Shown here in pieces: positions 2,251-40,620 of a DNA stretch of 64,000 nt. The stretch lies in NCBI GenBank assembly GCA_964036045.1, contig OZ038379.1, positions 25,854,001 through 25,918,000 of the forward strand, given 5' to 3'. How positions within the stretch are numbered: the stretch's first letter is position 1; every line of letters begins with the position of its first letter. The notes under the pieces were generated by a model. That model was not told the DNA's origin. It saw only the letters and a program-made list of their open reading frames with translations, and did no database searches. This DNA is from Eutreptiella sp. 'Long Island Sound 2002' (taxonomy: Eukaryota > Protista > Euglenida). The translations under genes were made by a program, and so were the position numbers.

Positions 2251-2980
2251 GGGGGAGCAGGGCGCACCTTGCGCACACCGTGCATCTTTTTTATTTGGAT
2301 AATTTACTGTACCCCATTGTTTTGCTTGGTCGTTGCCCCATGAGGTGGTGTGTTGCTGAGCTGGTGCCCCATTTCACCCTAAATACCTTGAGGGTTACAT
2401 TGTACATGTTATCCTTTGGTCTTTGGCTCAGCAACACGATGTCGTTGTTTTGGGTTCAAGCTGGTGCCTGTGTCTTCTATCACCGCAGCAGTGCAGATGA
2501 GCGGGTTCCTGCTATTGTTCTGGCCCCCTCGCAGCTTGTGATTACGTGCGCATACAATATGAGGTGAATGGGAAGGCGGTGATTCATGATGCTGCTGCAC
2601 TCCACCGACTCAAGTTCCACATTCGGAGCCCAGCCCCATCACCTTCAACCTCTTTTACAATTGAATGTGATGAACAGCATGCCTCGGCGGATGGTCGCCC
2701 ACTGTCCCCACACCCAAAACCTGATGGACAGCATGCTTCTACAGCACTACTTGCGCGGTCTATGCTCCAGATTCTTCGCCGGTTTTCATATTCTGCAAGG
2801 CTTTGACTGCGGAATGTCAGTTCAGACTGTTCAGACTGTGAGTACCTGATCGGATGCCCATTTGCCGGCTGTTTTCTTGGTGCCCATGTTGCTAACTGGG
2901 GGGCTTTCTGTGAGGGTCTGTTTGGGGGGTGAAAGCTGTGAAATTGCCCAAAAGGGTGTGCACCATGCACCCGTCACCCC
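2251..2980. mobile_element. Non-autonomous TIR element, GGGG termini, TAA TSD (PIF/Harbinger- or Zator-like), carrying a Tudor-like ORF relic
   Basis: TAA|GGGGGAGCAGGGCGCACC ... GTGCACCATGCACCCGTCACCCC|TAA; subterminal GCGCACC(G/T)TG 10-mers. Confidence 0.7.
2439..2806 (+). pseudogene. Frameshifted Tudor/SH3-like small ORF (copy A)
   Basis: MSLFWVQAGACVFYHRSSADERVPAIVLAPS [frameshift near 2545] VRIQYEVNGKAVIHDAAALHRLKFHI aligns by eye with the intact ORF at 25631. Confidence 0.7.
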
Positions 2981-3169
2981 TAAGACTGGGGCGTCATTTG
3001 CAAGTCAGCGGGTCCTGGGGTCCAAAGGGCAGGTCCTACCTTTTAGGCAGCGCTCTTATTTTCGGGGGGGGGGTCACCCCCTTTTGATCTGATGACTTTA
3101 GGCCCATGACCCATGGACCATTGTGACACACACCTCCCTCCATCTCTCACTGCATTTGCGTTGTGGCAG

Positions 3170-4080
3170 TGCACCTCAAGTCGAGAGCTGTGGCCCTGAC
3201 ACAACGGGTCCAGCTCCCCCAAGAAGGCGCCTCAGAGCCGAGCCCAGACGGCACCCCCGAGCCAGTCCCCCTCGCCCCCGGCGCGCAGATCCAGCAGCAG
3301 ATGGCGGCGGTGGAGGCAGAGCGGAAGGCCGCGCTCCAGCGGCAGTCTGACGCGCAGGCGCTGTCCGAGGCTCTTGCCGGGGAGGCAGCGGCCTGCCGAA
3401 GGGACCTCACCGCATGCATTGCGCGGCAGTGCACTCTGCTGGGCGACGCGCTCCGCGCCGCGCTCACGCTGTGCTACCTCGGGACATTCCCACAGGGTGT
3501 TCGCGACATGCTCCTGAATTGGACCCAGGCGCAGGCGGTGAGCAGCGGGTTCCCTTGCGCCGCAGTGCCGGACCCCGTCGTGGCGGTGTGTCATCTTGGC
3601 GACGCGCCTCCGCGGGTGCCGCGGCGCAAGGGCAGCCTCGGGCTGCCGGACTGCGACCGTGTGCGCGACAACTTCGCCGTTGTTGCCCACGGATCGCGAT
3701 TCCCGGTGCTGATCGACCCGCAGGGCGTCGCGCGCGCATGGCTGCGGCGCACTGCGCCCGACCTGCTCACGCTCCAGCACGACGCAGTTGCTCAGCAGAT
3801 CAAGAAGACGCTCGCGTTCGCACTGCCGCGGTCCCTTCCGGTGCTCGTGGAGGGGGGTCTGCCGCGGACGCTGCCGCCCGTGCTGCACACCCTCGTGCAT
3901 GCTGTGCCCTTCAGTGGCGGTAAGAACGGCACCCCTCATGTCATGATCGATGAGGATGCGATAGAGCTCGGGCCGGAGGCGCGGGTGTACTTTGCGTGTC
4001 TGTCCGCAGATGACCTGTCGTCGGAGCTTGTGGCGGTGCTGAGCCCCGTTGATTTCACGCTGGATGCTGCAGCGCTGCAG
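3170..4080 (+). CDS. Dynein heavy chain-like exon: stalk CC2 and AAA5
   Basis: Phase-1 acceptor matches the previous phase-1 donor. Motifs LLGDALRAALTLCYLGTFP, GLPDCD, RFPVLIDPQG, VDFTL match dynein GD.LL.A....YLGPF, GLP.D, R.PL.IDPQ, NFT. Donor CAG|GT at 4081. Confidence 0.92.
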
Positions 4081-4294
4081 GTGCCCGTGCCTCCCCACCC
4101 CCCACCACCGCTCCCCAGACCCACCGCCCACTTTGTGCGGCAGATATACCGGCAAAGTGAGACAAGCGGTGGGCACATTCGGTATCGATAACCGTAAAAC
4201 AAATGGTGGGTTTGAGGGCAGTCCACGGCGAAGGCAGCAATGCGCCCCTGGCCTCCGAGGGTGGCACCCACACACCCGAAGACACCCAGCACGC

Positions 4295-4634
4295 CCACAC
4301 ACACACACACACACACACCCACACACCCACACCCACACACCCACCAACACACACCCACGCACCGACACGCACCCACCCACCCACACCCACACATACCCAC
4401 CCACCCACACACACACACCCACCCACCCACCCACACACACACACACACACCCACCCACATACACACACCCACACACCCACACACCCACACCCACGCACCC
4501 ACACGCACCCGCCCACCCACCCACCCACCCACACCCACACACACACACCCACCAACACACACACACGCCACACACACCCACCCACCCACACACACACCCA
4601 CACCCACCCACACACACACACCCACACACACACG

Positions 4635-4665
<31 letters not shown>

Positions 4666-4692
4666 CCACACACACACAGCCACACACACACG

Positions 4693-4723
<31 letters not shown>

Positions 4724-4740
4724 CCACACACACACACACA
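4295..4740. repeat. Degenerate (CA)n/(CACC)n microsatellite
   Basis: Directly visible; source of the HT/VC-repeat ORFs. Confidence 0.97.
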
Positions 4741-6679
4741 AGCTGTGTACCTGCGCGATGCACCTGCACAATGAGACAGCACTCAGGTCCCCACAGATAC
4801 CCCACCACCAGCCCCCAGGCAACGGGTAAGTGCCCAGCTTGTGTGGGTTGTTGGACTTGCGATTTGGTGCAGCAAAGAGATGCAGACCCTGGCACTGGAA
4901 CGACAGCCCTGCAGGTACGTTGTCAACGGCTTGCTCCGTTGCTCTGACGGTGGTGTGGAAGCGCTCGAACAGCTTCGCACCACCGTTGCTGGGGCCCATC
5001 CTCGCCAGCACCAGTTCCGCAGGACATGCAGGAGCACAGACACAGGGAGCCCGTATCTGGGGGGCACAAAACAGAAGCAAATGGAAGCACAACGGTGTGG
5101 AAGCCTGACAGAACCTTCAGCATTACAGATCATCCGAATCCAGGTCTCTGACGTCAGTGCAGTATATGGACATGTGCATGTGGACTAAGCATGCCATTCA
5201 GAAGACCTATGCTCCTCGTGTGCAGGGGTCCTACGCCCCATTCAAGTGGCGTGTGTCGTGCAGAGTGCAGCAAACATCCCCTGACCACCGCTTCCGGGCC
5301 CCTCGCATCTTGAACACTCTGTTCTCACGTTGGCTGCACCACGGGCCCGCACAATCCCTCATCCCTTGGACCATCTCCGGGCGGCTTTTCTGTCACAGCG
5401 ACAGGCGTATGACAATGCTACTGACGTGACTCGTGCAGGGCCCAGGGGTTGCAGCTGCTTCGCACTGCGCGGGACGAGAGAGGGGGGCGGACCCTTTTCT
5501 TAACGCAGCAGGTTTCGCAGTGGAATGGAGGCCCCCAGGGCTGCCCCCTCACAGTGGTAGGGGTCCATTGGTGCGAGAGCGGGCCGGTGGATCGAGGGGC
5601 AGGGCGGTGGGTGCTACGCAAGGCTTTCATTGAGGATTGTGTTTTTGTTTTGCACCGACGACAGCCTCGGGCTTCAGGTGGCAGAAACGCGATGTACGGA
5701 CGGCGGTTGTTGCTGAACCGACGGTAGTTGATGGTCAACAGACACACACCGTTGGCCGATGACCCACAGCGGTTGCTGATCGGCTGATGCTTTGCTAATA
5801 TCCGCACGCACCGGAGTCGGATCCTTTCTTTTCTTCTCAAATTGATCAAATTAAGGACAGCTCTCGTCAGTGGGGGGTGGGGTAGCTGCGGCCCTTGACC
5901 CCCACCCTCCCCACCCCACACCTCAAAATGGCCAAAATGTTTAGAAGGTCTGCACCACATTTGGTGCCAATTTTGCGCTGAAGGCGCCGGAATTTTTTTT
6001 TAAGAGCAAATGGTGGGGGGTAACTTTTCCTTCTTACCCATGTGTTTATACTCAAAATGCACAGAATTTCATGGGGAATCCGAATATGTTTGCAAAACAT
6101 GAAAAATGTTTTGACCCCTGACCTCCCCCATCCAGCCCCCCAATCCTGGCTGCTATGACCGGACCCCCCTGGGGGTAGAATTCTTTTTTCAAAACCCCCA
6201 CATATCTGTGTTCAAACCACTGCAACAAGGGAATCCTTTTGAGGTATGTATGTTGGGGTACCGGGGACCCCAGCCTGGCTGCCCCCCCCCCCCCCCTCCC
6301 GAGCCCCTCCCCCGCCACCTTTCAGGGGGCCAAAATGGTTAGGGGGTTTCGGTGCCGGGGGCTGCACCTGGGCACCCCCCGTGGCTCTGGTCCTACGTTC
6401 CTTTAGTACCCTCCCTCAGTCGGTGACTGGGTTGGTGCCTTGCTTGCCTGAGTACCCCTTGCCCCAGCCTGTGCTTGTGGCGGTGGTGTACCCCCCTCCC
6501 TGAGGACCTGTTGTACCCCCCCGCCCCAACCGCTTTTGTTTGCCCCATGACCGATCCAACTGTTTTGCAACTGCCCGAGTTTGTCCTCAACCGCTTTTCG
6601 AATTGCAAAGCCCCCCTTTAGTTTCCCCATTCTTCAAGCCCCCACTCTTTCGCCCACACCCCTCTTCCATTGCCAACAG

Positions 6680-6928
6680 GTGGAACTGGATCGGCATGCA
6701 GTTCAGAGACTGGAGCCGGAGGTGTGCCAGCAGGCAGACCGCCTGGAGACCACCCTCCGCGGGTGTCAGGAGCATTTGCGGGCGCTACGCACAGGTGTGC
6801 GCAAGCGGATGCAGACGTTGTTGAAGGAGGTGGGCAACGGCGCGGCGTTGCAAGAGGTCAAGCGCATCTGCCCCATCATAGAAGAGGAGGAGGCCCGCCA
6901 GTGTGACCTCCAGAAAGCCGTGCAGGAG
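6680..6928 (+). CDS. Dynein heavy chain-like exon: AAA5 extension/buttress coiled coil
   Basis: CAG|GTG acceptor, GAG|GTATGT donor, phase 0/0. The joined peptide DFTLDAAALQ|VELDRHAVQRLEPEV parallels dynein NFT.T..GLE.QLL..VV..E.PELE. Confidence 0.85.
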
Positions 6929-7045
6929 GTATGTGACATGGCATGGCAGAGCACATGATTGTTAGATCATGGGCACGCCGAAGCAACTGCGCTTGGGTCT
7001 CTTGCGGCCTGAATAGGGGGTATCCGCTTAGACTACCCAGGCAAT

Positions 7046-7270
7046 TGGTGTGGTGTGGTGTGGTGTGGTGTGGTGTGGTGTGGTGTGGTGTGGTGTGGTG
7101 TGGTGTGGTGTGGTGTGGTGTGGTGTGGTGTGGTGTGGTGTGGTGTGGTGTGTCGTGGTGTGGTGTGGTGTGGTGTGGTGTGGTGTGGTGTGGTGTGGTG
7201 TGGTGTGGTGTGGTGTGGTGTGGTGTGGTGTGGTGTGGTGTGGTGTGGTGTGGTGTGGTGTGGTGTGGTG
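7046..7270. repeat. (TGGTG)n pentamer array
   Basis: Near-perfect tandem array, directly visible. Confidence 0.98.
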
Positions 7271-7403
7271 CACGGGCGCTGCCAAGGGGGCCAGCCAGTT
7301 CGAATCTAGACACCCAACTGCGCCCCCCTCCAGACCCCCCCAAGTTTTGGAACAGGTCTTTCTCGAAATTGAGATTTTGGGGAAAACTATGGGCGCCACA
7401 GGC

Positions 7404-8385
7404 CAGGGACTTGCTTTAATTTTCATTCCAGCAGGGGGGGGGGGGGGCCTCCCCCCTGGACCCCCTCCCCCCCTCCCCTGGACCCCCTCCCCCCTCCCCC
7501 CTCAGCTCAAGTGCACCCGAAAACCTGGGGTTTGAGAACATTTTTTAGTCATGGGAAAAAATTTTCGGCGCCTTCGGCGCATGCCATACACTGTGTACAT
7601 ATTGCTCCATGTACCTTGTTTTCCAGACTACCATGCCCCAACGCTCGTTGTCAGTGTATTTCAGCTCCCCGGTCCCACCATTGCCACACACAAAACATGA
7701 AGACGTAATTGACGCGCTGCTCTATTTCACGTTTAAAGATAGGATCACCGATCATAAAAGACAAAAAGCCTACAACGAGGCACAAAAGGCATGTGCCACA
7801 CTTTTTTTAAGCGTACCAATGGCCACACTGTGCGAGTTTGTCGCTGTGGCACAAAAAATGGCCACACGCGACCGGTTCAGGCGAGGGTTAGGCTGAATGA
7901 CAAGAAAGATCACTGTCCTCTGGTCCGAGCCCGGCCAGGCTGCACCGGGGACCATGGCAAACGTCACCCGGCCATGGAAGCAACCGGTGAAAGGCGAGCC
8001 GGTACACAGCTTAGGAGGGGGTCGCCTGCCAAGCAGCGGGATCCCGCAACTCAAGCCACAGGGGTGAGGCAGTCGTACCGTAGACAGCGGGAGCAATACC
8101 CCTTGTGGCGAGAGATACTCCACACGGCTGATGGTGAATGTCCTGCTTTGTTGTAGTTGTTGTGTATTGGTGAGATGTGGGAACCCTAAATTGACATTCA
8201 ATGATGAATTTCCTTTTTTTACGGCCGACAACATGACATTTCCATGTGCTGAGTTGTTTGTTCTCCAATAATTTTTCTGTTCCCTTTGGATTGGGTATGT
8301 TCTGGCGGGGGGCTCCCCCCTGGACCCCCTCCCCCCTCCCCTAGACCCCCTCCCCCCCTCCCCCCCTCGCTCAAGCAAGTCCCTG
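7404..8385. mobile_element. Non-autonomous TIR element inserted into another repeat
   Basis: 12-bp TIR CAGGGACTTGCT/AGCAAGTCCCTG, flanked by GCCACAGGC on both sides (7395-7403, 8386-8394). Confidence 0.8.
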
Positions 8386-8754
8386 GCCACAGGCGCCGAA
8401 GAGTTTTTTCTGGACACATGGTATGGAGTGAAATTGTTCATCCCCCTCATGTGTGTATACTCAAAATGCTCAGCTCACATTGGGGATTTCAAGAGTAGTG
8501 CATAGTATGCTTAGTTGGAACTACTTTGATCTATCCCCACTATGGGGACCCCCAAGAAAGTAGGGGTGATGTAATACTGATCTCTCCCCACCCATTGCCG
8601 GAAATACCGAAGCCGATGGCTACACTATCCATTTGGGTAGGTGCGTGAGTTAGGCTACCTGGGCCAGCCGCAGACCCAAGTGTTCTGAGATACCTACCCC
8701 CCCCCCCCCTTTCAAACTACCCAGAACCACGGGGGGGGGGGGGCGGCCGGGCCC

Positions 8755-8915
8755 GGTCCTTGTATGCAACACCCCCCAGCCCCCCACCCCCCCAGGTTTT
8801 GAGAGATAGTGGTGTTGGGGCCATGGCACCAACGGCGCCAAAGTTTTTTTGTGCCTGCTTCCCTTTCATCAAACCATCCATGTTTTGAGTGCCAAATTAG
8901 CAAGACGATGCAAAC
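8755..8915. repeat. Dispersed repeat; inverted copy at about 52885-53050
   Basis: TTTTGAGAGATAGTGGTGTTGGGGCCATGGC...CATCAAACCATCCATGTTTTGAG matches the reverse complement of 52885-53050. Confidence 0.8.
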
Positions 8916-9182
8916 GTCGTTTGTTGTCAAGTGAAAGATCACCACAACCACTGTGGACACACCTAGCCATCTGCAGCCGTTGCTTCACAACAGCCACCAG
9001 CAGCTTCCCCAAACCCGCCCCAGACACACATCCCCCCTGGAGGTATGCATGTGCTAGTAGTGGGTCGTGCGTAGGCCCCCCCACCTTGGGACCCCCCCCC
9101 CCCACGGGTGAACCCCCCCCCACACCCTCCAGCCGAGCCCCCCCCCCCCCCCCCCCCCCACACCCTCTAGCCCTTCAGGGCC

Positions 9183-11697
9183 ATGTGCGCCCTGCTGCGG
9201 TCCCGGGGTTATGCCGTATGCTGGCGTGACTCCCTAGGGGCCACGGTCTACGACAAAGCAGGCCGCACCTCGCTTTGAGGCTAGCGCGGGACGAGGACGT
9301 GGTCGTGCAGTCCGAGAGCGCCGCCTGGGATGTGGCCATCACGTGGTCCGGGCTCATGTGGGCCAGGGCCCCGCTGCCCTGGCCTGCCCGCGAGCGCGCC
9401 GCCCTGATGACGGGGTACCTGCGGGCAGTGGCGGACTGGGTGGTGCTTCCACCGCCCGCCCGGTGGGCGCGCCTGATGCGCGCCGGCGGCAGCGGGTGGC
9501 CGGCGGGCCTGTCCCGCCCCGTCGCTGACACTGGCACCCTGCTACGCTACGCCATGGGCGAATCCGCGTGCGCGGTAGCTGGGCCGCGCCCTGAGCTGGT
9601 GGGCCACGCCATCCCCGTGTCCGTGCTGGACCCGGCGGAACGTGGGGCGTGCCCGGACGTGGTCCTCAGTGTGGGCACCCCGCCGTCCCTGCAGGGAGCC
9701 ACCCCGGAGGTGGTCCTGGCCCCGCTAGCAACTAGCCGGGCGCTGTTCCCGGGCTTTACGCTCCAGCCGTTCAGGGACGGACTCCTGCTGGCGTTCCCGG
9801 CGGGCGCGGTGCCACCCAGCCTCCTCGCGGCCCTGCACGCCTTCTTCCCCGTGGAGGCGGCGCTCCCGGGGGACCTGCCAGGGGAGGGCGAGGGTCCCGA
9901 GCCCGAGGCTGGCGACCCCGACGTGGGCCTACAGCTCGACGTCGATGAGGACGATGAGTACCTCCTCAGCTAGTCGCCCCCCCCCTCCCCCCCCTCCCCC
10001 TCCCTCCTGCCCCATCCCCCCCCCTAGGTCCCAACCCGGCCTCGGGGGGGGGGGGGGGGGCGTCGGCTCAGCCCGCGGCCGGGCACCCCCCCGCCAGGGC
10101 TGGGATCCCCGGTGCTGCGCACAGCCCAGCCGCCAGGACCCGCAGGGTAGCGCCACCCCGGTGGGCCATGACCTTGCCCCCCCGGGCAGCAGCGCGCTCC
10201 CGCACACCGCCCTCCTCTCTCGTGACCGGCGTGCCGCGCCTGGGCACGCAGTGCACGCGGACCTCAGTGGGCCATGACCTCGCCCCCTGTGGCCGGGGAT
10301 GGCGGCGGGAGGGCGCGGTACGGAGGGTACGCGACGTCGCGCCGCGGCATGGTGCCAAGTTGTACCCCTGCGGAGCGAGAGAACGTCGCCATGCCTGCCG
10401 GGGGGGGGGGGTGCCGTGCAGGCATGACCGGGTCCATGACTGAGGTCGCGCCTTGCCCTAACATCTCTCCGGGGTGGCCGTGCCCCTAGGCCTGGTGAAG
10501 GGTGGCGGTGGGCTAGGCCCGCGACGGCGCTCGCCGAAACTTGGGGCGTCCCTGTAGAGTGGGGGGGGGTCGGGAGCAAGTGTCTCCCCTCCTCGCCGAC
10601 TCGGCTGTTGCCGGTGCTGCCTGGGCGCCGCTCCCAGACCCCAGCCTCTACCCGAACCCTCCCCCCGTGCCCCCCCCCCCCCCGCCCCTGCAGGTCGCCC
10701 TAACCTCCTGGTGCTCGTCCCTCGGTAGCATGGGCGGATGCACGTGACACGGGCAGGCAGAGCGGGCACGGGGCTGGCCATTCGCTGCAATACGGAAGCT
10801 CTGTCAGTGGTACTCGTGCAGGCGCCGCCGGCGGCCCACAGTGGGGCCGACGGTGCGCTCGTCTGCCTGCTCAGACTGAGCCAGCCGTGTGCGTCGGGGA
10901 GGTCAGGGAGGGCCAGGCAGTGGTGCGCGTACCGGATGGGCCGTCGCGGGCTGCAGCCGGTTTCCCGCAGCCGCCTGAACACCTGGGAGCAGCAGACGCG
11001 CTGCTGGATGGCACGGCCCTCCGCCTCTGGCTCGCCCATGTGAGCCACGCGCTAACCCCCCCCCTCCGCCTCCCGCGCACAGAAAGGTCCCTCGCGAGCA
11101 TCGCCTGTGCGCTGCACGCCCTCGGGGAGCGGCCCCCCGGCCTCCTCAGCCTGGAGGACATCCTCATGGGGTGCTTGCTCCACTGGACGGCTACGGGGGC
11201 GGACCCCGGATGGGGGCTGTCAGCCCTGCAGCGCGTCCCCCAGGGCCTTGCAGTAACAGGGCCAGCGCTCCACGAGGCCCTCGGCTGGCGCTGCGGCACC
11301 CCTCTGGGACCTGGGTCCCCTTCCCGTCCGCCGCGGCGGGGCCGCCACCCCGCAGGCCTGGACCAGCGGCCCCCAGCGCCGGGTGCTCCTGATCGAGGGG
11401 TGGGACAGCAAGGAGGAGGGCTCCGGGGGCTGTTGGGTGGGTGTCACCCGCGAAGGCGCCGTCCGGTGCCTCTCCCGGGGCAATAGGTCCCTTGCCGCGC
11501 CCCCGGACCTGCATGCGGCCACCGGCGCAATGCTGGCCTCGATCCCGAGGGTGTATGCCGTGTGGTATGCGGTGTTGCCCGCCCCAAGGTCGCCCCCGCT
11601 GCCCCCGCAGCACCAGTACCCCCGCGCGGGGGACGACGCCACCGCGCCCGCATGGCGGCTGCGCCGCAGGGTGCATGTCGCTTTTCACGCGCCCTGA
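9183..11697 (+). pseudogene. GC-rich insert in dynein intron 4 with two frameshifted coding-like ORFs of unknown origin
   Basis: ORF1 about 9183-9973 (frameshift near 9272, acidic tail DVDEDDEYLLS). ORF2 about 10740-11697 (frameshifts near 10880 and 11300). The flanking dynein exons join in frame without this region. Confidence 0.55.
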
Positions 11698-12835: not shown

Positions 12836-12869
12836 AACACCGAAACAACAATGCTTCTTGGCCCTGCAG

Positions 12870-24690: not shown

Positions 24691-25558
24691 TCTTAACAGA
24701 CTCATGCCATTCTGCATTCAATGCCCCCCCCACCCCCCTACACACACCACAAAAGGTCACCCCCCATGCTCGTGATCCATGGTGTTTGGGCCCATCTTCA
24801 GGTCCACATGGACAACCGGGAACAAGCCACAGCCCAACCAATTAGCGGTTCCATTCGGGACGAAAAGAAAACACACTCCGGGCATGGACATTTGTTAGAG
24901 ACAAGAAGAAACGGGCACTTGTTGTTCTTGGAAAAAATCAAATCAGGGGCCAATATTTTAGGTGTCAATTTTGGAGAAAAATGTGTCGGCAAACCTATAT
25001 CTCCCTGCAACCATCATCAGGGTTTCAGCAATGGTAGCTGCAAGATCTCTGTTGTGTTTGGTCAAGCCTAGAAACACTGAAAGTATCCCCTGCTGTAATT
25101 TTCAATGTAATTTTGAAACCTCTGATGCCCAAAAGTAGTATGTTTCCTCTGCCCAAGCACCCGAAGATCAAACGTAAGCAGCAACACACAAGGGGAGGAG
25201 GAGCGTAGCGAGTCCTTCCCAAGCCTAGTCACGAAACTAATGGCATTAATTGGCTTATGTTTCATTTCTCCATCTTTTTTCGATTGCCTTTGTTGGTTTT
25301 TATGTAAGATGGGGAAAATTTCGCTGCTATGTACATTTTGCTTCATGAGTCTGCACTGTTGTGTCCAACCATGGGTCGTAGAAAGTTAGAAGAAGTTTTT
25401 GTGGGAAGTTGTGGCAGCATGTAGTGAGGTTCTTTGCACCCTCCCCCCCCCCTTGCACAAGCACGGCCGCGGTCCCAAAAGCCAGGTCAAAACGGCGGTT
25501 CAACGCCCACCCCGTGTTTAGACAAAGCCGTGCATGCGCGTGACACCCGTGACATCAA

Positions 25559-26364
25559 GGGGGTGTTGCCTGAACCGTGCGCGCACCGTGCACGCACCGT
25601 GCGCGCACCGTGCGTCCTTTTGCGTATTCTATGTCCACCAGATCCACAATGCCTGAATCTGAGCTGCCCTGGCTTGTCGCCGGACTGCCTGTGTACTACC
25701 ACCGCTCCAACGGGGATAGGGTGTCGGCCACTGTCGTTGACCCTTCTCCAAGAGGTGGGCGTCGCGTCTCTATTCGGTACGAATTGGGTGGTGAAGAGGT
25801 CTTGTACGAGCATGCACCCGAGGAGCGGTTGGAGTTTGCAATTGTGACTGCTGAGAGCCCCGATTCCCCCCAACCTGTGCACCATGAGGCGCCGATGGAC
25901 GCTTTGCTGGAGCCCCAATTACCTGAAGTGGAAACTAAAGCCCCTAGAATTGATGATCATGAGCCAGAATGCTGTGGCGGATGAAATTGAAATTCCCGTA
26001 ACCCAACCAGTGTTGTCGCTTGTGTTGTCGCCTGTGCATGGTTTGTAACGGAGGTGCGTGCAAGGTGCAGAAATTGGGAGCCTGGAACCTGTGACAAGCA
26101 TCAGATTCAAAAAAAAAATTCCCGGTACGCCAATAGGGGCTGCAGGGTGCAGAAAATAGGACCCTGGAACCTGTGACAAGCATCAGACTAAAAATTGAAG
26201 AATCCTGGTATGCCAGTATGGACTGCAAGGTGCAGAAATCAGGACCCTGGGTGTGTTTCTATGGGGGCCATTCAACGGGGTACAAGTTGGGCAACCATCC
26301 CAAAAACATTGAACCGTGCGCGCACCGTGCACGCACCGTGCGCGCACCGTGCGACAACGCCCCC
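25559..26364. mobile_element. GGG-terminus family element nested in the poly-C element; carries an intact Tudor-like ORF
   Basis: CAA|GGGGGTGTTGCC ... GACAACGCCCCC|AAA. The block GAACCGTGCGCGCACCGTGCACGCACCGTGCGCGCACCGTGCG occurs near both ends (about 25572 and 26311). Confidence 0.7.
25631..25984 (+). CDS. Intact 117-aa ORF with Tudor/SH3-like N-terminal domain and acidic/Pro-rich tail (copy B)
   Basis: MSTRSTMPESELPWLVAGLPVYYHRSNGDRVSATVVDPSPRGGRRVSIRYELGGEEVLYEHAPEERLEFAIV; homologues at 2439 and 40021. The fold is inferred from the beta-strand pattern only. Confidence 0.6.
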   Translation: MSTRSTMPESELPWLVAGLPVYYHRSNGDRVSATVVDPSPRGGRRVSIRYELGGEEVLYEHAPEERLEFAIVTAESPDSPQPVHHEAPMDALLEPQLPEVETKAPRIDDHEPECCGG

Positions 26365-27200
26365 CAAACGTGTGGGGGAGCCCTCAGATGGGCATGGCGA
26401 GGGGCTGCGAATGGGGAAGAGCACTTTATCAAAAGCGGCCATGTGCTCAATCTCCTTCTCATTCCGCATGTGCTTCAAATGGATGTAGTTGTCCCCATGA
26501 CGAGAGGGACCAAAAATATTGGCAGACACATGTTCCCCAGTGCTTCGAACGTAAGTGCCAGCCATGGTGGGAATAACATTGTTAGCCATGGCTGAAAGTC
26601 ACATCAGAACAAACGGCATGGGGTTGCAACATGTGGTATAATGTTGTTATGGACACAATGCACAATCACAAACATGACTGAGCCCCTCTTTCCCTGTACA
26701 AGCGCTCTACAAACACCCAATCCTCCATTCTGGACCACAAAAACCCCAAATTTCCTTAACACGGCAGTTCAACGCCCACCCTGTGCTTAGACAAGGCCGT
26801 GCATGCGCAAGGGGGGGGGTACCACACATTATCGTTATGGTTGCACAGGAATATAATGTGTCGTGAAATCATTCTATGCGGGAAAAGTATCATCTTAGAG
26901 CATCGATTTCACCAATCAACAATATGAATTGTGCATCCTTTTTCACCAAGTGTGTTGATTAGTTTCTCTAAGAGAACATAATATAGGCCAATCGAACTAT
27001 AATAATGGTTTAGTTTAACTTAGAAAACAAAAGCGTGTTAATGGTACACTTGTATAAATATTCCTAGGTACATGACATGGAAGATGAGTCTCTAAACTCT
27101 TGAACCCCTTTGCCGGGTCTTGTCGCGGGTGGGCGGGCCGGGCTTTTGGACCACCTTGTTGAAATAGCACTTTTAGACATACAAAATCCCTTACGCTGAT

Positions 27201-30400: not shown

Positions 30401-31839
30401 CTAGAAAGTGGGCTGCTGTGCTGCAGGGCACATGTGGTCCAGGTGCAGTGCAACAGGTAGTCCATTGTGCAGTTTTCATTCAGTATGTCATCCTCACCTC
30501 TTGAGATAGCATGGCTTGTCTAAACAACGGCGATCTTGTTTACTCGCTGTTTTGCTGATCAGAGTCTTTGTGGCTAAGACAGCGACATCACATGTTTGTG
30601 AGCACCTTATAGTGGGAAAGAGGGGCTGGATCATGTCCGTGAAGAGTTGTTGATTCTGCTCTGAACAATTTTCTGTGTTAGGCTACACGGCACTCTTTTG
30701 ACATAACCCCGCTTAGGTGTAAATTAGGGGGTTTGCCACAAATATTGGACACATATATGTAATGGAGTGATGGGTTGTCGTCACGGGAGGGCGGGTTCAT
30801 GGATCAGTGATACTTGGGGTAAACGGAGCGAATGGGACACATTTGAATGCAAGGCACCCAATCCGTGTGGCATAGAAGGATGGAGGGCAGATGAATGGAG
30901 AAATCACGAGGGGATTGGCAGAAACACACCTTCATGGGCACATGCATCCACACACACCTCACCAACGGAGGGTTCCAGAGTGGCTTGCTATGATGGGCAA
31001 GCTGCTGTTTTTGCGTCTTGTGATGGTATATGGTGATGATGCTTGTGCCATTTTGCCTCAACCGTGACAGGGTACAGATCTGTAGCACAAACACATGTGT
31101 CCATGCCACTTTTGCCATGGAGCTAAAAAACCCCACGATTGGGGTTAGCCCCATCTGTATCGTGCCACAAGTTGTGTGTGTGTGCTGAAGGGGGAGGAGG
31201 GGCGTAGCCTCTACTTGTGCACAGGCAGAACCATGTACCACATGCCAACGTTTGGCGGGAGGTTGTCTCAGGGGCCATCAAGGCACTGAGATGAGCAGCA
31301 TGCAAGTGCACAATTGGGCACTAAGCTTGGCCACCAAATGCAGATTGTGACTGGGCTGGAGCATTTCGGTGAATGAATGTTGGCCTCCCACAGAATCGCC
31401 TACACCAATGCAGCCGCATGATGAATTGTGCAAGCACACCAATACGATCCTGTTTAGGTCCCGACAAATGTTCGGACCGCCTCTACCTCCAGCACTGCAG
31501 AGTGTGAAGCTGTAATCTTCCCTCCCTGTCAGCCGCTAGGCATACTTGCAGATGCTGAGAAGCATGAGCCCAACCTCTTCAACTCTTTGGCTTAGGAGGG
31601 CACAGGAGACCCGGCACAGAAATGTGATCTCAAAATTGACTGTATGAGGTTTTAACTCCACAGAAGGGCATATCAAGGCTATATGGCGGTACTTGTTCGT
31701 AAGTGATGCCAAATATGTGTGCTACCTCAGCGCTACATATGGGTCTCCCTCGGTAATAGTGCCCAAGGTGCTAGCTTCAAGGGATACCGCTGGCACCCAC
31801 CTTAGGACCAAGCTGGCACGGCCGTGCCATCCTAAATGG

Positions 31840-32872
31840 TCCAGGATCACTTTTGGAAGAACGCATTTTTGACCCATTTTTGACCCATTTTTGGTCGCGA
31901 AACGGCCCATTTTCAAGGCATTTGGGGATTTTCAATGGGCCAAAACACGTCACCACGGGCTCAAAACAGGCCAAAAACACTTGTTTGAGCATCCCGAATG
32001 GTTCAGTATCACTTTTGGAAAAACACTTTTTGACCCATTTTTGGTCCCAAAACGGCCCATTTTTAAGGCATTTTGGGATTTTCTATGGGCCAAAATGCGT
32101 CACCACAGGCTCAAAACGGGCTAAAAACAGTTGTTTGAGCATCCTAAGTGGTCTAGGAACAACTTTGGAAAAAATCTTTTTTTCGCCCCGGGGACCCTGG
32201 TGGACCCACCGTTGGCCCCCACCGTGCACGGCTCGGGTTGCCCTCCGGCTCCACCAAGTGACCACTGATATAGGGGTCAAGGCCTCTCATTTGGCGACTC
32301 TAAGGCTTGGAAACCAGAAAAAGTGGGGGGTTGCGGGTGGACTAGGTGCCCTCGGAATTTGGGTCTCACCCACATAGCCCAAGATACGCTCTGCTCTTGG
32401 TTTTGGGGCTGTTTGACACAAACAGCGCACATTCCGGGCCATTTTTAGCCATTTTTGGGCCGTTCCTCGGACATATCGTAGAGTTAGAGGGCAACAAAGG
32501 GCTCTTTGTCACGAGGAAGTCAAGGCGCACGTGGTGTTTATGGACCGTTCCCCTTCGTTTCTCCATTTTGAATGGGTTTCGGGGCCGTTTTGGACCAAAA
32601 AAGGCTGTTTTGGGGCACAAAAATGCGTAGTTTTGGGAGGGCACCTCCCGACTTGGCACCCCCGCCGCGGGGCACCACCGGTGAGTTTTTGGCTCAAATT
32701 TTGGATTTGGCAAGGGCACCACTAAGGGAATAAGGGAATACGATGGCTAGATTAGGGAAAGATCCAAGGCATTGGGATGGAGTAACAGCCAAAACGGAAA
32801 CGTGATGTGCTTGCTTGCTGTTGTTGGTGTTGTTGTTAGCTAAAGTTAAGGGGAGAGGGGTGTCGTAATATA
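31840..32872 (+). mobile_element. Copy 1 of a long foldback repeat family (partial)
   Basis: TTTTGACCCATTTTTGGTC.../AAAACGGCCCATTTT internal repeats; ends (CTTG)n...AAGGGGAGAGGGGTGT; homologous to 35960-36839. Confidence 0.8.
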
Positions 32873-33729
32873 TATTGGCTTTTGATGGGGGGGGGGGGGT
32901 CAAAACAGATATATTAACCCGCACCCGACCGGTTGTGTAGTGTCGCCCAATTTCTTTAAAAAAAATTGGTGTTTCATGGGGGGGGTGGGTATGTAATAAC
33001 TTTTTGGATAGCCCTCAAAGATGGCTTTACAGAGACTTAGGGTTTGGGGAGGGCTGGATTTTTTAAAAATACCGTCCACTGTTCGGTCTGGTTTAACCTG
33101 CATGCAGACTTGTATACATAGTTTTCGTTAGTGTACGCCATTCGACACTAAAGGCCAACACAAGCACAAATCCATAGGCGTTTTGAACCACAAATGGTTG
33201 TTTCTCATACGTTCCCATCCTCTCATAACAGTTTTTGTCCTTCTTTTTGGGACACATGGCTCCCGATATTTTGGCGGATGTGGTCCACACGAGCCTGCTG
33301 CATGCTAGTGGTCATGGACTGGCTCAAGTTGCGGAGGTTAATCCCAGTGCAGTTGCCAAAGGGACCTCCATCGGCCACTTTGCGGTCCCGTTTGCTAGGG
33401 GACTGGCTAGGGGATGAGCAAGATGAAGATTTCGATGGGGAATGCATTTTGGATGGGGAAGACATTGCAGTGTTTGTGAAACACAAAAACAGTGCCTACA
33501 ATACACCAGTGCAGAGAAAATGCACAAAAATTCAGCACAACACCCCGAACCAGCCCCCCTAGCCATCCCAATTTCCTCCGAAACCATCAAAAATGAATTC
33601 AGCACCCTCAAAGTAGGGGGGGGGGGGTCATGGGAGAAGCCCCAAATAATCCTCTGTGGTGACCTGAAATTGAAAAAGGTCAGTTGCACGGTAGTCCCCC
33701 CCCCCCCCCCGTCAAACGCCCATAGATAT

Positions 33730-34890
33730 TAACCCTAGGTAACAACCAACAAGCAAGCAAGCAACAAGCAAGCAACGAGCAATCAGCATGCAACAAGGAG
33801 TTCTCCTTTCCGTTTTGGCTATTGCTTTGTCTCATTGCTCGGGGCTCTACACCACTCTAGCCATCCTTTACCCTATGTGGTAGCTTTGCCAAATCCAATT
33901 TTTGAGCCAAAAACTCACCGGTGGCGCCCCAGGGCGGTGGCACCAAGTTGGGAGGTGCTCTCCTAAAACTGCGCATTTTCTGCCCCAAAACACCCTTTTT
34001 TGCCCTAAAACAGCCCTGGAAACCATTCAAAACACCCAAACAAAGGGAAGTGGTTGCTACATTGCACGTGCGCCTTGACTTCCCTGTGACAAAGAGCCCT
34101 TTGTTGCCCTCTAACTCCACAATATGTCCGAGAAACGGCCCCAAAATGGCCCGAAATGTGCGCAATATTTGTCAAACAACCTCAAAACCAAGAACGGGCC
34201 GTATCTTGGGCTGCGTGGCTAAAATTCGAGAGCACCTAGTCCACCCGCAATCCCCCACTTTTTGTCGTTTCCAAGCCTCAGAATTGCCCAACGAGATGTC
34301 TAGGCCCCCATACCAATTAGTCACTTGGCGGAGCCGGAGGGCAGCCCGGGCCGCGCACGGTGGGGGCCAACGGTGGGTCCACCAGGTGCCCCGGGGCGAA
34401 AAAATGATTTTTTCCCAAGTTGTTACCAGACCACTTAGGATGCTCAAACAAGTGTTTTCAGCCCGTTTCGAGCGTGTGATGACGCACTTTGGACCAAGGA
34501 AAATCCCCCAATGCCCTGAAAATGGGCCTTTTTGGGGCCAAAGATGGGTCAAAAATGGGTAAAAAATATGTTTTTCCAAAAGTGATCCCGGACGATTTGG
34601 GGTACACAAACAAGTGAAACCAGCCCATTTTGAGCCCATTTTGAGGCATTTTGGCCCCTCTAAGGTCCCAAAAGGCCTTGAAAATGGGACGTTTTGGGAC
34701 CAAAGATGGGTCAAAAGAGGGTCAAAAACAAATTTTTCCAAAAGTGTTCGTGGGCCATTTGGGGTGCATAAACAACTTTAACAAGCCCATTATGAGACCG
34801 TTTTGAGCCATTTTGGCCCCTCTAAGGTCCCCAAAAGGCTTGAAAAGGCGCCATTTTGTAAAGAAAAATAGGTCAAAAATGGGTCCAACA
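33730..34890 (-). mobile_element. Copy 2 of the same foldback family, inverted
   Basis: (CAAG)n start followed by the reverse complement of the blocks at 31840-32700. Confidence 0.8.
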
Positions 34891-35548
34891 CATGTACCAC
34901 CGGTGCCCAGCACAGAACATTGAAAGAGAGACCAATATTGTCCGGTTACCGGTGGCAATTTTAGGAAATCTGTACCGACGTGCATGCGATATGCTTCGGT
35001 CCGTCGCTTAGAAGTTTTCGAAAACCCTTGGAAAGATGCTCGGAAGTTTTGGCAGCCAGATCGGCCCCCCAAAACGCAACCGATATCGGTAGGAATGTTC
35101 CATGGGCTTCCCAGCCGACCGTGCCGGGGGAGCTCGGAAGAAATTTTTCAGCCCGAACCCAGTGGAATTTTGGTTGGATGCTTGGTGGAAAGATGCTCGG
35201 AAGTTTTGGCTGGGACTTCCGAGATCAACCCTGCAATATGAGTCCCATTTGCTGAGCATGAATGCTGAGCATCCCCAAATATCCTGAGCAATATGCTCAG
35301 CATTTTCCTGCCACTTTTTACCTTCTATGCTGTGCGTCCCAGCACCATGTGAAATGTGGTTTTTTCAAAAATGATCTTGGACCGTTTAGGGTGCTCAAAC
35401 GGGACAATAGCGCCCATTTTGAGCGCATTTGGACCCAATTTAGCCCATTTCGCCACATGTATGCACCAAGTTGTACACTTCGCATGCATCTTACAGTGAT
35501 ATTGTGGAGCCACCTAGAGTTGGGGAGAGGGATGTAGATTAGAGGATA

Positions 35549-35583
35549 TATTACTGCACCCCTCTCCCCTTAAATCTAGCTAA

Positions 35584-35614
<31 letters not shown>

Positions 35615-36839
35615 TACTTCTGCTTCCCGTTTTGGCTATTGCTCTATCTCATCGCCCCGGGCTCTACTCTACTCTAGCCATCCTAGACCCTAGGTTGTGG
35701 CCAAATCCAAGTTTTGAGCCAAAAACTCACCGGCGGTGCCTCGGGGCAGTGGCACAAAGTGGGGAGGTGCCCTCCTAAAACTGCACATTTTCTGCCCCAA
35801 AACAGCCTTTTTTGGCCCAACACGGCCCCAAAACCCATTCAAAACGGACAAACGAAGGGAAACGGTTGCTACACTACACGTGCACCTGGACTTCCCAAGG
35901 AGCCCTTTGTTGTCCTCTAACTCCACGATATGTCCGAGAAACGGGTTATTTGTGCACCGCAAATGGTCCACGATCGCTTTTGGAAAACATATTTTTTACC
36001 CATTTTTGACCCATTTTTGGCCCCAAAACGGCCCATTTTCAAGGCACTGGGGGATTTTCCACAGTCCAAAGTGTGTCACCACGACCTCAAAACGGGCCAA
36101 AAACACTTGTTTGAGCATCCCAGGTGGTCTAGGCACAACTTGGAAAAAAATTTTTTTCACCCTGGGGCACCTGGTGGACCCACCGTTGGCCCCCACCGTG
36201 CGCGGCTCAGGCTCCACCACCAAGTGACCACTGTCACGGGGGTCTAGGCGTCTTGTTGGGCGATTCTAAGGCTTGGAAACGACAACAAGTTGGGGTTGCG
36301 GGTGGACTAGGTGCCCTTGGATTTCGGATTTGAGCCATGTAGCCCAAGATACGGCCCGTTGTTGATTTTGGGGCTGGGTGACACAAACTACGCACATTCA
36401 CGGCCATTTTTAGCCATCTTTAGGCCGTTTCTGAGACATATCGTGGAATGTCGAGGGCAACAAAGGGCTCTTTTACGCGAGGAAGTCAAGGCGCACGTGT
36501 AGTGTAGGAATCGTTTCCCTTCGTTTGTCCATTTTAAATGGGTTCAGGGGGCGCGTTGGGCCAAAAAAGGGTGTTTTGGGGCAGAAGTTGCGCAGTTTTG
36601 GGAGGGCACCTCCCGACTTGGCACCACCGCCCCGGGGCGCCACCGGTGATTTTTTGGCTCAAAAGTTGTAATGGGCAAGGCCACCACCTAGGGTCCGTGA
36701 TGGCTAGAGTAGAGTAGAGCCAGTAGCATTGAGAGGGTGCGATGGCCAAAATGGAAAGGAGAAGTGCTTGCTTGCTTGCTTGTTGCTTGCTTGTTGCTTG
36801 CTTGTTAGCTAGTTTTAAGGGGAGAGGGGTGTAGTAGTA
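35549..36839. mobile_element. Complete foldback element with about 400-bp inverted arms
   Basis: TATTACTGCACCCCTCTCCCCTTAAATCTAGCTAACAAGC versus GCTTGTTAGCTAGTTTTAAGGGGAGAGGGGTGTAGTAGTA; arms about 35550-35945 and 36430-36839. Confidence 0.85.
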
Positions 36840-36840
36840 T

Positions 36841-37853
36841 ATGGCCTATGTGGCGATCCCCACCCCCACCCTTGGCCAACCGGTGCACTTTGGGGTGGGG
36901 TTAGGGACCCCCCCCTATTTATGGGTCGGGAAACACAGAAACAACATGTTTTAGAATGCATTTGGACACTCTACATTGGGTAATTGCCCCCATAAAGGTG
37001 TAAGAAGGATTAAAATAGGCTAAAAATAGGGTATGGCATCACAGCTGCCACAATGTGAACAACTCGACTATAAATAGCCCCATTTCCCCTAAAGATAGTC
37101 TTGATAGGCCCTACCCCCCCCCCCCCCTTGTATAAGCTACGCCCTTGTCCAAGCTACAGTAGGCGTAGGGACCGTATTAATTTGGGACCTAATTTTAATT
37201 CGGTACCAAACATAGTGCAGCCACATAAGACATGGGTTTGGTGACGGATTTGCGAGTCGCATAGAGTCGTGGACACATTTGTTGTGAGTATTTGCCCACT
37301 TGAACCCACATAGCTCTGATTTTGGGGATGTTTGTGCATTATATGCCCCTTTCTTGCACCAGCTCACCATGCAATCCTCTCTTTTTGAACCTGGGCGCCC
37401 GGTGTTGCTAGTAGTATGTGTCGCGCGCAAGCTACGCCCGTGTCCAAGCTACAGTAGGCGTAGGGACTGTATTTATTTGGGACATTGGCGTAGCTTATAC
37501 AAGGGGGGGGGGGGTACTAATGCACCTTGAACCATATTAGTGAGGGGAAATGTACAACACAATCCCACGTTATGTATTTTGAGTGGATAAAAGGGTTGGA
37601 TGGGATATTTCTCGTGAAAAAGGGGCTATTTTTAGTATTTTTGTTAGGATCCTAATTATAGTGATGCCATACCCTATTTTAGACACCATGAGCCCTTCAT
37701 TAGGGCAAATACCCTCTAAAGACGATCCAATTCACTTCTAAAACATGATTTTTGTGTTTCCTGACCTCAAAATAGAGGGGGGGGTTCCCTAACCCCGCCC
37801 CTAAGTGCACCAGTTGGCGCAGGGTAGGGGCGGGGGATCGCCGTATACACCAT
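36841..37853. mobile_element. MITE with long imperfect TIRs, hosting a nested poly-C MITE
   Basis: GGCGATCCCC...GCCAACCGGTGCACTTTGGGGTGGGGTTAGGGACCCCCCC mirrored by GGGGGGTTCCCTAACCCCGCCCCTAAGTGCACCAGTTGGC...GGGGATCGCC. Confidence 0.75.
37114..37514. mobile_element. Poly-C/TTG-TIR MITE with TA TSD
   Basis: TA|(C)14TTGTATAAGCTACGCC ... GGCGTAGCTTATACAA(G)12|TA; internal direct repeat TGTCCAAGCTACAGTAGGCGTAGGGAC. Confidence 0.9.
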
Positions 37854-38492
37854 GTGTGTGTGTGTGTGTATTTATATGGTATATGGTATATGCTAGCTCT
37901 GCCCCCCCCCCCCCTCCCCATCAGAGGCCCCCCCTTCCCCTTGGGGGTCAGAAGGACCCCCCGGGCTAGGCACATTTTGCTCCCCTCAGCCAGGCTTGGA
38001 GGGAACGGTAGCGTACCAAGCATCCTGTTCGGCCAAAATGCCCCCGACCAACACTATACGCAGCACTATCCAAGGCGTCCTTGCCCTCGGGACCCTGAGA
38101 AGGAAAGGATTATGCAGCCACTTCGATTTATCTCTCTTGTGGGGGGCCAGAGACAGCAGGGGATGTGTCGCCATTTTGATGTACCCCCCTCTTTGGGCAC
38201 CATGAGGCAGCAGGGTTTACATGGCCACTTTGATTTATCTGCCTTTCGGGGAAACCCGAGATTCTGCTTGGCGGGCTTTTCTAAGGGGAAGGTAACACTG
38301 GGACAATGTCGGGATCCTTGGCACAACAGTAGCGGGCTGGGCAAACACTAGCTGTTGGTACTGCGCATGGCTTTTCTCAATGTAGTTGTGATCTTCCTCC
38401 ATATCAGAGCATGTGGTGCTGAAGATTCTCTGTGACATATGCTGCGCCGACCCCAACGGAAGCTGAGAGACTGACCAGTGGGTGGTGAGGCC

Positions 38493-38618
38493 ATGGGGCG
38501 CAAACCGCAGCACCACATCCAGGCGGAGATCCAGAGGGAAAAGAAGCTGAAGCAAAAGCTCTCCAGACATGCTGATCCGAGCCCGGAAGTCAATTTGCAG
38601 GACCTGACAGAGCAGCAG
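38493..38618 (+). CDS. Gene 2 (unknown; possible axonemal microtubule-binding repeat protein), putative first exon
   Basis: GCCATGG start; MGRKPQHHIQAEIQREKKLKQKLSRHADPSPEVNLQDLTEQQ; donor CAG|GTACAT, phase 0, joins 41722 in frame. Confidence 0.55.
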
Positions 38619-39780
38619 GTACATGCCGGTGCCCTGGGGTGAGGGGCTCTGCTTACAGAAGAGGGTGGACTGATGTGGTGAGAAATGCCACCACCGGGTG
38701 TATCAAAAAACGCAGTCCTATCCCAATAAGCCCCCCCGCAAGAAAAGTTCTCCAAAAAAGAACTGAAATTGAGATTTTTTTTGTCTTGGTCACCAAAGTT
38801 AAGATGTCCATTCAGTCTGGAGATGTCATCGTGGGTGCTCTTTTCGTCATCTCATGGCTTTGCAGACTTTTCACAAGCATTTGTGTGTCCTTGAAGGACG
38901 AAGTTTGCTGGTGCCGTTCGTCACAGGCCACCTTCGTCACAGGCCACCGTGGGCCAGCTTCAATCTCTTCGCAATGTCCCGGACCCTGCAATGCTCATCC
39001 TTGTCACAAACCGCCCACTCAGCCCAGTTCCCCCTGGTCATTTATTGGTTCCTCGTCACCAGAGGCTTCATCATGATCCGTTACCAGTTTACTCCACCAG
39101 TCCACTGGAATTCACATGGCACGCGCCCCTTTCCCATGCTCTGCTGCTCTTCCCATTGCCACATGACCAGTGGGTGCTCGTTCCCGAAAAAATGGGGGGA
39201 AAAAGGCGAGTTTGTTGTCTCCCTCCACGCTGGGGGGGTCTCTGGGCAGGAGCCAAAGGAACAAAGCGCCCAGCAGAGAGCGTGGACATGAACATGCGGT
39301 CTCTTGCTTCTAGATTGTCGCAGTCTGAGCAGCGATGGAATCCCCCCCCCCCCCCCCGCGCGCCGCCGCCACTGGAAGCCCTGGCCCTGTTAAAATTTCC
39401 AACATCAGCGATGAAGGGCACCCTCCAAACCCCACGGTCATCGGAATGGCTCAGTGTGACGCGTGTCGGGTCTGGCAGGGGGATGGAATATTGCAATTGG
39501 GAGCATGGGGACCGACGTTCTCCTCTTACCCACAAGATTGCCTAGCACCCGACACTACCCCAGAACTGATCTCAACCAACAAGCAGGTCATCTAAAAGAC
39601 ACGCCACTGGACGCCAGTTGTACTGCACAGTACATGCAGCCGTGCCAAGATGACACTATGGCAGTTTCCGTTCGAGTCAGCTCATTATCACTACATGTCA
39701 GATCCACTACCACAGTCATTTGTGGGATCATCACAGAACTGGACAGCTCTGAACCTTGATCCCAGGAGTTATCTCAGGTA

Positions 39781-40620
39781 CCCCCCCCCCCCCCCTTGCA
39801 AACTCCCACCCCTTGCAATCCCCCCCCCCCCCCCGGGAGACCATCACTTCCATGTTTTTCTACTTAACATGTATTGTGCTCGTTTGTGTTGCCCATCTGC
39901 TTTCCGCATGGCCTTGCATTGCTTTCCCATTACTTCAAATCAAGCACCTGTGTGTGTTCTGTGGTATTCTGTGTCCAAAGGCGTTGTATGGGTGTGTTGT
40001 GTTGCTACTTCAGACCCAAGATGTTTTCTCCTGGTGACCATGTACGGTACCACTCACGCACACTTGGTGCACATGTGTTGGCCACTGTCATGGGCCCTTC
40101 ACCAAATGGGCCACAGTTTTGCCGCATTTGGTGCCTCCAAAGAAGTTGGTGGCTGCCCCCAAGGCAAGAGCAAAGGCTGCCCCCCAGCCAAGAGCAAAGC
40201 CAGCCGCCAAACGGACTGGTCTGGCTGTGCAAGCGGGTGCTAAAGCGGCTGCCAAACCAGCCCAACGCGCCATTGCCTCCTCCTCATCAGCCAGTGCAAC
40301 ACACCCCGTGCCTGTCATGCAAACTGAGCATGTGCAACAGTTCAACGTGTGTTATTCTCGTACCCAGAAGTTCTTTACTGTTCCTTTGGATCCTCAATAA
40401 CATTTGTGTTGGATGAAACACATTGGCACCGCATCAATGCAAAAGTCGCTTCACACATGTTCTCTTTGCTTGCATCAGTGGAGGGTACCACAGTTTGCCT
40501 TGAAATACCCTTGCAATCCCCCCCCCCCCCGGGGAGACCGTCACTTGGCGACCGTCTCCCCCCCCCCCCACCCGGGAGACCGTCGCGCGCGAACCCGGGA
40601 CTTTGCAAGGGGGGGGAGGG
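39781..40620. mobile_element. Poly-C/TTG-TIR element with TA TSD, carrying a Tudor-like and Lys/Ala-rich ORF fragment
   Basis: TA|(C)13TTGCAAACTCCC ... GGGACTTTGCAAGGGGGGGGAGGG|TA. Shorter relative at 47652-48100 lacks about 39905-40295. Confidence 0.85.
40021..40300 (+). pseudogene. Truncated Tudor-like ORF (copy C) fused out of frame to a K/A/P-rich stretch
   Basis: MFSPGDHVRYHSRTLGAHVLATVMGPSPNGPQFCRI, then in another frame PKKLVAAPKARAKAAPQPRAKPAAK. Confidence 0.6.

Follow-up and report, generated by a model that had tools for sequence, protein, structure and literature searches.

The window, by which we mean the whole analysed stretch of 64,000 nucleotides, comes from the euglenid Eutreptiella sp. 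'Long Island Sound 2002' (contig OZ038379.1, positions 25,854,001 to 25,918,000 of the forward strand) and contains elements with terminal inverted repeats (TIRs) in which short open reading frames (ORFs) of one family lie. A first-pass annotation had recognised three of these ORFs (A, B and C), assigned a Tudor/SH3-like barrel to them and proposed that they were an accessory module of the elements. We built a family profile from 128 members and searched it against the six-frame translation of the window. The profile matched B with an E value of 4e-26, C with 2e-19, A with 5e-16 and 1e-8 (in the two frames over which A is now spread) and, with 4e-30, a fourth motif ORF, copy D, at 26589-26365 on the minus strand, adjoining B; no match beyond these four copies was found in the six-frame translation. 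The matches are far beyond chance, and with E values of 1e-8 to 1e-30 for all copies they bear out the proposal of a single homologous domain family. The three ORFs had been placed correctly (ATG at 2439 for A; an intact 117-aa ORF at 25631-25984 for B; ATG at 40021 for C), but the true total is four, D having been overlooked.

The copies differ in how much of the shared domain, hereafter the barrel, they preserve. The B ORF (25631..25984, plus strand) encodes 117 aa, with the barrel at residues ~14-71 followed by an acidic tail. The A barrel ORF (2439..2650, plus strand) is broken: relative to four family members it has suffered a 4-nt deletion after ~2535 (alignment with L065, L073 and L068), so that its second half, through a Ser/Pro linker, is read in another frame. 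In C (40021..40128, plus strand) only the first ~36 residues are present, that is, strands 1-2 and a loop; the match is confined to profile positions 2-42, the rest of the barrel having been lost by an internal deletion whose junction lies at ~40126-40132 and beyond which the frame reads the 3′ part of the element. The D barrel ORF (26365..26589, minus strand) comprises 75 residues, covering an N-terminal barrel and a Ser/Pro linker. The same frame is 100 aa long in other D copies, and in the window it runs into the B insertion described below.

To set the ends of the elements, each window copy was aligned, flanks included, with 11-30 further copies from the genome. The A element is a non-autonomous element of 730 bp (2251..2980, plus strand), at whose borders the homology to 11 other copies begins and stops. 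It has the termini GGGGG...CCCC and is flanked by TAA at 2248-2250 and 2981-2983, and its family is old, with stop codons in many copies. The B element (25559..26364, plus strand; 806 bp), also non-autonomous, has 12-bp TIRs (GGGGGTGTTGCC / GACAACGCCCCC) and a 3-bp duplication, CAA, at 25556-25558 and 26365-26367. Identical 3-bp flanks were found in 26 of 29 B copies; these 26 matched duplications comprise 17 different triplets, which are A-rich and include TAA twice and TTA not at all. Just inside the TIRs lie direct arrays of an 11-bp unit, four per end (25571-25614 and 26310-26353), where a protein of the element may bind. With 4 or 5 units in the 3′ array, the element measures 806 or 817 bp. 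A description of B as lacking TIRs and having 44-bp direct repeats at its termini was rejected: those repeats are the 11-bp subterminal units, and the element in fact ends in the 12-bp TIRs. The non-coding 3′ half contains, at 26052-26250, two tandem units of ~83-117 bp that are 82% identical. The B family is very young, an identical protein being encoded by more than 50 genomic copies.

The C element, a pogo-type internal-deletion derivative of 840 bp (39781..40620, plus strand), is bounded by poly-C-TTGCAA inverted repeats and by a TA duplication at 39779-39780 and 40621-40622; TA lies beside the poly-C end in most other C copies too. The D element (25439..26819, minus strand), a derivative of the same pogo type, measures ~575 bp without its insert and has poly-C-TTGCRCA inverted repeats, with TA as its right and CA as its left flank. 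Homology to other D copies (L032-L042) covers 25443-25558 and 26365-26819, with a 3-bp overlap that is the duplication of B. The arrangement is a nested insertion, in which the young B element (25559-26364) sits inside the older D element and severs the D barrel ORF after codon 75. The division into two classes of TIR elements made in the first-pass annotation stands, with A and B combining GGGG(G) termini with 3-bp duplications, and C and D poly-C/TTGCA inverted repeats with TA duplications.

For B, C and D we found longer coding elements (a 3.1-kb element in L057 for D, a 2.1-kb element in L074 for B, and L058 and L059 for C) that match both ends of the short element and whose interior is absent from it. 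The D short element is made up of 455 bp from the 5′ end and 113 bp from the 3′ end of the element at L057:5316-2212. The first frame of that element, 337 aa, starts with the D-type barrel (residues 1-60) and continues through a Ser/Pro-rich linker and a WW domain (PF00397, 6.8e-9, at L057:4700-4800(-)) to a weak HTH_Tnp_Tc5 match. The second frame, 473 aa (L057:2402-3820(-)), matches the transposase family DDE_1 (PF03184) with an E value of 6.9e-5 and 22.9 bits against a cut-off of 22; genome-wide, DDE_1 gave 789 first-look candidates. L058 and L059 are longer relatives of C in which the N- and C-terminal transposase parts are both present, and comparison with them shows that in the 840-bp C element the first ~36 barrel residues are fused to the 3′ end of the element. 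An N-terminal barrel on a pogo-like transposase occurs in C, in D and in at least three further lineages, and the order of barrel, linker, WW domain, PIP-box-like motif and basic or helix-turn-helix (HTH) region is kept among lineages that are only 39-68% identical.

A WW domain follows a disordered linker of SPSPSP type in at least four pogo-like lineages, and the linker resembles the phospho-Ser/Pro ligands of WW domains. PIP-box-like motifs (Qxx[L]xxF[FL]) lie downstream of the barrel or the WW domain in both element classes (L074:1927-2793(-), L058:4910-5878(-), P0109 and P0123). The Drosophila pogo transposase binds PCNA, and by analogy a link to PCNA may be general in these elements. In L055 and L060, B copies lie under long open frames that were set aside as read-through into neighbouring retroelements; at L055:1360-6832(-) there is a Copia-like long terminal repeat retrotransposon with gag, integrase and reverse transcriptase frames, and a B element in its gag region creates a spurious 460-aa frame. 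Compared with pogo/Tigger elements (DDE_1, IS630-Tc1-mariner) and their MITEs (miniature transposable elements with inverted repeats), the C and D types are alike in their TA duplications, short TIRs and short forms made by internal deletion, and their transposases share DDE_1 and a PIP-box-like motif, with a candidate CENP-B/Tc5-type HTH region whose match lies below the cut-off. They are unlike them in placing a Tudor-like barrel and a WW domain ahead of the HTH region and in having TIRs that open with long poly-C runs.

The A and B types probably have parents of a different kind. In the 806-bp B element, 412 bp from the 5′ end of the L074 element (2.1 kb) are joined to ~350 bp from its 3′ end, and the B ORF holds the first 112 residues of the ~560-aa coding region of the longer element, followed by 5 residues from the junction. 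A 320-aa frame begins with the barrel in L074 and overlaps by 61 nt with a second frame of 289 aa; the latter ends in a PIP-like box (QRTLTGFF) and then a Cys/His zinc finger, for which L074:1927-2020(-) gave a weak ANCHR-like B-box match (E 0.008). A Pfam scan of the L074 frames revealed no catalytic domain. Two sequences nearly identical to the second frame carry additional residues: C17:8025798-8027603 has ~344 at query residue ~190, within a 654-aa open frame, and C1:66842038-66843837 has ~325 at query residue ~189, within a 670-aa open frame. These extra residues fall exactly at the deletion junction. Candidates for full-length A/B-type elements are C17:8024900-8027700, where a 263-aa barrel frame accompanies the 654-aa frame, C1:66842000-66845000 and C21:29370500-29373000. 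A third homologue, C21:29371523-29371861, is 41% identical to the second frame and lies 33 codons upstream of a DDE_Tnp_4 match (C21:29371025-29371423) in the same 411-aa frame. Genome-wide, DDE_Tnp_4 gave 3193 first-look candidates. The zinc-finger C-terminus of L074 recurs at four loci, within 0.3-1.3 kb downstream of A-type barrels. By these comparisons, Harbinger-like elements are the most likely source of A and B, and L074 is itself most likely a deletion derivative lacking the catalytic core.

A word search for longer relatives of the L074 frames returned only short fragments from the same organism, without Pfam annotation. A B-like barrel lies under a '650-aa open frame' that had been a candidate for the DDE_1 family; this frame was rejected, as it consists of two frames joined across one stop and contains no DDE_1. 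A Myb/SANT-like second protein was not detected either, the first L074 frame giving no Pfam match and ESM Atlas look-ups scoring at most 0.83. In relation to PIF/Harbinger elements and Tourist-like MITEs, the A and B types are alike in duplicating 3 bp, in having short TIRs rich in G and motifs repeated near the ends, and in that the second frame of the long B element is, by its coordinates, co-linear with DDE_Tnp_4 in its homologues. They are unlike them in that the B triplets are not TWA, the upstream frame begins with the barrel, no Myb/SANT-like protein was detected and the putative transposase has a Cys/His zinc finger at its end, behind a canonical-looking PIP box.

To the shared domain itself, structure prediction assigned the same fold in both types. 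An AlphaFold model of the B type, made from an alignment of 8 sequences, has five strands and a predicted local distance difference test score (pLDDT) of 79. In a model of the D type the barrel reaches a pLDDT of ~90, residues 63-92 form a disordered linker and the three-stranded WW sheet has a pLDDT of ~85. Foldseek matched the barrel to the Tudor domains of PHF1/PHF19/Pcl, the C-terminal domain of the Rous sarcoma virus (RSV) integrase, the SND1 Tudor, Agenet and PWWP domains (TM ~0.6, E 0.02-0.15). In a second ranking, by an aligner independent of Foldseek, the B and D models gave the same top set, with Z 7.4-8.3 and a root-mean-square deviation (rmsd) of 1.4-2.2 over 51-56 residues. The B model matched the PHF19 Tudor with Z 8.3 (rmsd 1.8 over 55 residues), a PWWP domain with Z 8.2 and the MTF2 Tudor with Z 7.8 (rmsd 1.4 over 51 residues), and further matches of both models included TDRD3, PHF20L1, SGF29, SAWADEE, MRG15, LBR, SMN and 53BP1. 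In the 128-member alignment four aromatic or His columns are conserved (Y in 119/128, F/Y in 106/128, Y in 109/128 and H/Y in 116/128). The barrel is predicted, at the level of fold only, to be a five-stranded Tudor-like SH3 barrel of ~60 residues. The first-pass proposal of a Tudor/SH3-like barrel is in agreement with the two independent models, both of which are predicted to resemble Tudor domains most closely (Z 7.4-8.3). The Tudor domains of the Polycomb-like proteins (PHF1/MTF2/PHF19) are the best structural matches to both predicted models (Z 7.4-8.3, rmsd 1.4-2.9 over 51-56 residues), and are unlike them in sequence, with 11-16% identity and no profile match.

Together, these observations make it probable that the Tudor-like barrel is the extreme N-terminus of proteins of two DNA-transposon superfamilies and that the copies in the window are deletion derivatives of the corresponding elements. 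This judgement covers the identity and the origin of the ORFs; homology, boundaries, duplications, parent-derivative relations and the predicted fold we regard as established. In the pogo-like proteins the barrel would come first, followed in turn by a disordered Ser/Pro linker, a WW domain, a PIP-box-like motif, the HTH and DDE_1. In the A and B types the barrel would head a Harbinger-like coding region, whose downstream frame would be the N-/C-terminal remainder of a DDE_Tnp_4-type transposase with a zinc finger. Short, MITE-like derivatives would keep the 5′ inverted repeat, the leader and the adjoining part of the first coding exon, would have been amplified to thousands of copies and would now be decaying roughly neutrally. 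The barrel is retained in the short derivatives because it adjoins the 5′ end of the element, and, since C keeps only half a barrel, such retention needs no function of its own.

This account departs from the first-pass annotation, in which the ORF was a separate accessory module or cargo. The barrel instead forms residues 1-60 of the L057 transposase frame and starts the ~560-aa coding region of L074. An independent accessory ORF under selection in the short elements, for example an anti-silencing factor, could explain why complete barrel ORFs are free of stops in 149/150 B and ~137/150 D elements and why the start of the ORF is kept by four different families. The B copies, however, are at least 94% identical and have existed too briefly for stops to build up, stops abound in the A family, and C derivatives with half a barrel still reached thousands of copies. 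Moreover, in the autonomous element the barrel ORF continues into WW, HTH and DDE_1. Departures from the D-family consensus fall about equally on the three codon positions (25/25/34), with a mean ratio of nonsynonymous to synonymous substitution rates (dN/dS) of 0.56 in a sample biased toward conserved copies. Between autonomous and short copies dN/dS was 0.4-0.9, which fits near-neutral decay of the short copies. We consider the cargo explanation very unlikely, and judging from these sequence comparisons it appears already largely refuted; individual short copies seem to decay in a manner close to neutral.

Constraint of another kind is visible between families. Identity is 39-63% at codon positions 1 and 2 and 30-45%, near saturation, at position 3, a contrast expected from long-term constraint on the autonomous lineages. 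Clustering at 70% identity gave ~29 barrel lineages, nearly all of which begin at the initiator Met, and the same core residues are kept by these ~29 clusters. In a tree of the 29 barrel clusters all A/B-type barrels fall on one side of a weakly supported branch (77/21), a topology by which a single transfer between the superfamilies would be neither proven nor excluded. Since the barrel has been kept by ~29 lineages of two superfamilies, it probably matters for transposition.

Copy numbers, given here as first-look candidates in the 2.28-Gb genome from family sets that may overlap, amounted to 4364 for B, 3969 for C, 3323 for D and 1050 for A, and all 150 candidates scored per family were significant. 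The high genomic copy number anticipated from the window is thus confirmed, with thousands of first-look candidates for three families and 1050 for the fourth. Among 1.84 billion representative proteins, the profile matched 420 clusters (50% identity), the best 150 of which are 48-317 aa long, bar one: P0153 (1569 aa, 11 'stretches') was rejected as a genuine long relative and is a 1,569-aa low-complexity artefact. Hundreds of transposon remnants (P0010-P0158; 420 clusters) have been called as 'proteins' in public databases, which is an annotation artefact. Eight clusters were traced, and they led to ENA assemblies with megabase contigs, presumably of the same organism, apart from a JGI metagenome contig of 1.3 kb and two ENA contigs that are short; with these three contigs excepted, the barrel domain is presumably specific to this lineage.

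These searches also bear on whether the copies could be fragments of a host gene that were captured by transposons (Pack-type) and are decaying neutrally. That most copies are short and many are broken would be in keeping with capture. Yet no longer multi-domain host protein with the barrel was found among the best 150 of the 420 matches, and in ~29 lineages the barrel always stands, from the initiator Met, at the very N-terminus of the element's own protein. We regard host capture as highly improbable.

Several points weigh against the derivation of the ORFs from the N-termini of pogo-like and Harbinger-like proteins, or against parts of it. On the pogo-like side, the HTH_Tnp_Tc5 match of L057 reaches 18.2 bits against a cut-off of 22.2, and its DDE_1 score clears the cut-off only marginally. 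For the A/B-type elements, the link to DDE_Tnp_4 is based on coordinates and frame lengths; the barrel exon of the Harbinger-like element may be joined to the transposase frame by splicing, or the two may be separate ORFs; and the target triplets of B are not the TWA typical of Harbinger. As to the fold, a Pfam search of five ORF pieces at E values up to 10 gave no Tudor, Agenet, PWWP, chromo or MBT match, the barrel part of the longer proteins likewise had no Pfam match, and Z values of 7-8 are, by the aligner's own warning, common for small domains.

What the barrel does can be said with less confidence. Our tentative preference, by analogy, is that it serves as a tether between the transposition complex and chromatin or some other host factor. 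Autonomous elements would need the barrel, hence its upkeep in ~29 diverged lineages, and in the pogo lineages the WW domain would act as a second adaptor, in analogy to the chromodomains on integrases. A tether is the most economical role because of the fold and the adjacent WW adaptor. A serious alternative with the same origin, slightly less favoured, is that the barrel is a DNA-binding or multimerisation module of the transpososome, resembling KOW/NusG barrels or the C-terminal, SH3-like domain of integrases from retroviruses. For small barrels with such a fold, nucleic acids are as frequent a ligand as histone tails, and the fold matches include two-domain structures of the RSV integrase, the C-terminal domain of the murine leukemia virus integrase, NusG/KOW and a PWWP domain that binds single-stranded DNA. 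However, the top-ranked folds are histone-tail readers, pogo-type proteins have HTH domains for end recognition (the HTH match here being below the cut-off), and the occurrence of the same barrel in two superfamilies whose ends are unrelated in sequence argues against sequence-specific binding of the ends. A more elaborate possibility, which we think unlikely, is that the barrel was exchanged between pogo and Harbinger elements as an adaptor to the same chromatin mark or other factor of the host, and that the barrel-only peptides of B and D titrate this site as dominant-negative regulators. The KP repressors of P elements offer a comparison for such regulators of transposition.

To our knowledge, fusions to chromatin readers are the main known way in which mobile elements choose their landing sites, and in DNA transposons these are mostly chromo or PHD domains. 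The integrase chromodomains of Ty3/gypsy chromoviruses and the Chromo/PHD fusions resemble the present case in that a small reader-type fold sits on an integrating enzyme and recurs in independent lineages; chromatin tethering is the meaning that they probably share with the modelled barrel. The present case is unlike them in that the barrel is Tudor-like, N-terminal and without a detectable sequence family, and in that one homologous barrel is common to two unrelated DNA-transposon superfamilies in a single genome. DNA transposons fused to Chromo/PHD domains have been surveyed, and fusions between reader domains and mobile elements are known more generally (bioRxiv 10.1101/2021.11.30.470311). 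In the literature that we searched there was no report of a Tudor-like barrel and a WW domain in front of a pogo HTH, nor of a Tudor-like domain on Harbinger proteins.

In this one genome, a Tudor-like domain that had not been classified before probably stands at the head of proteins from two unrelated superfamilies of cut-and-paste elements. For gene annotation it matters that conserved small ORFs spread across a 2.3-Gb genome are a by-product of the formation of deletion derivatives. If the barrel does act as a tether, it would be a compact natural targeting module and a test case of how transposon superfamilies exchange modules, and it would give a handle on the chromatin of euglenids, about which little is known.

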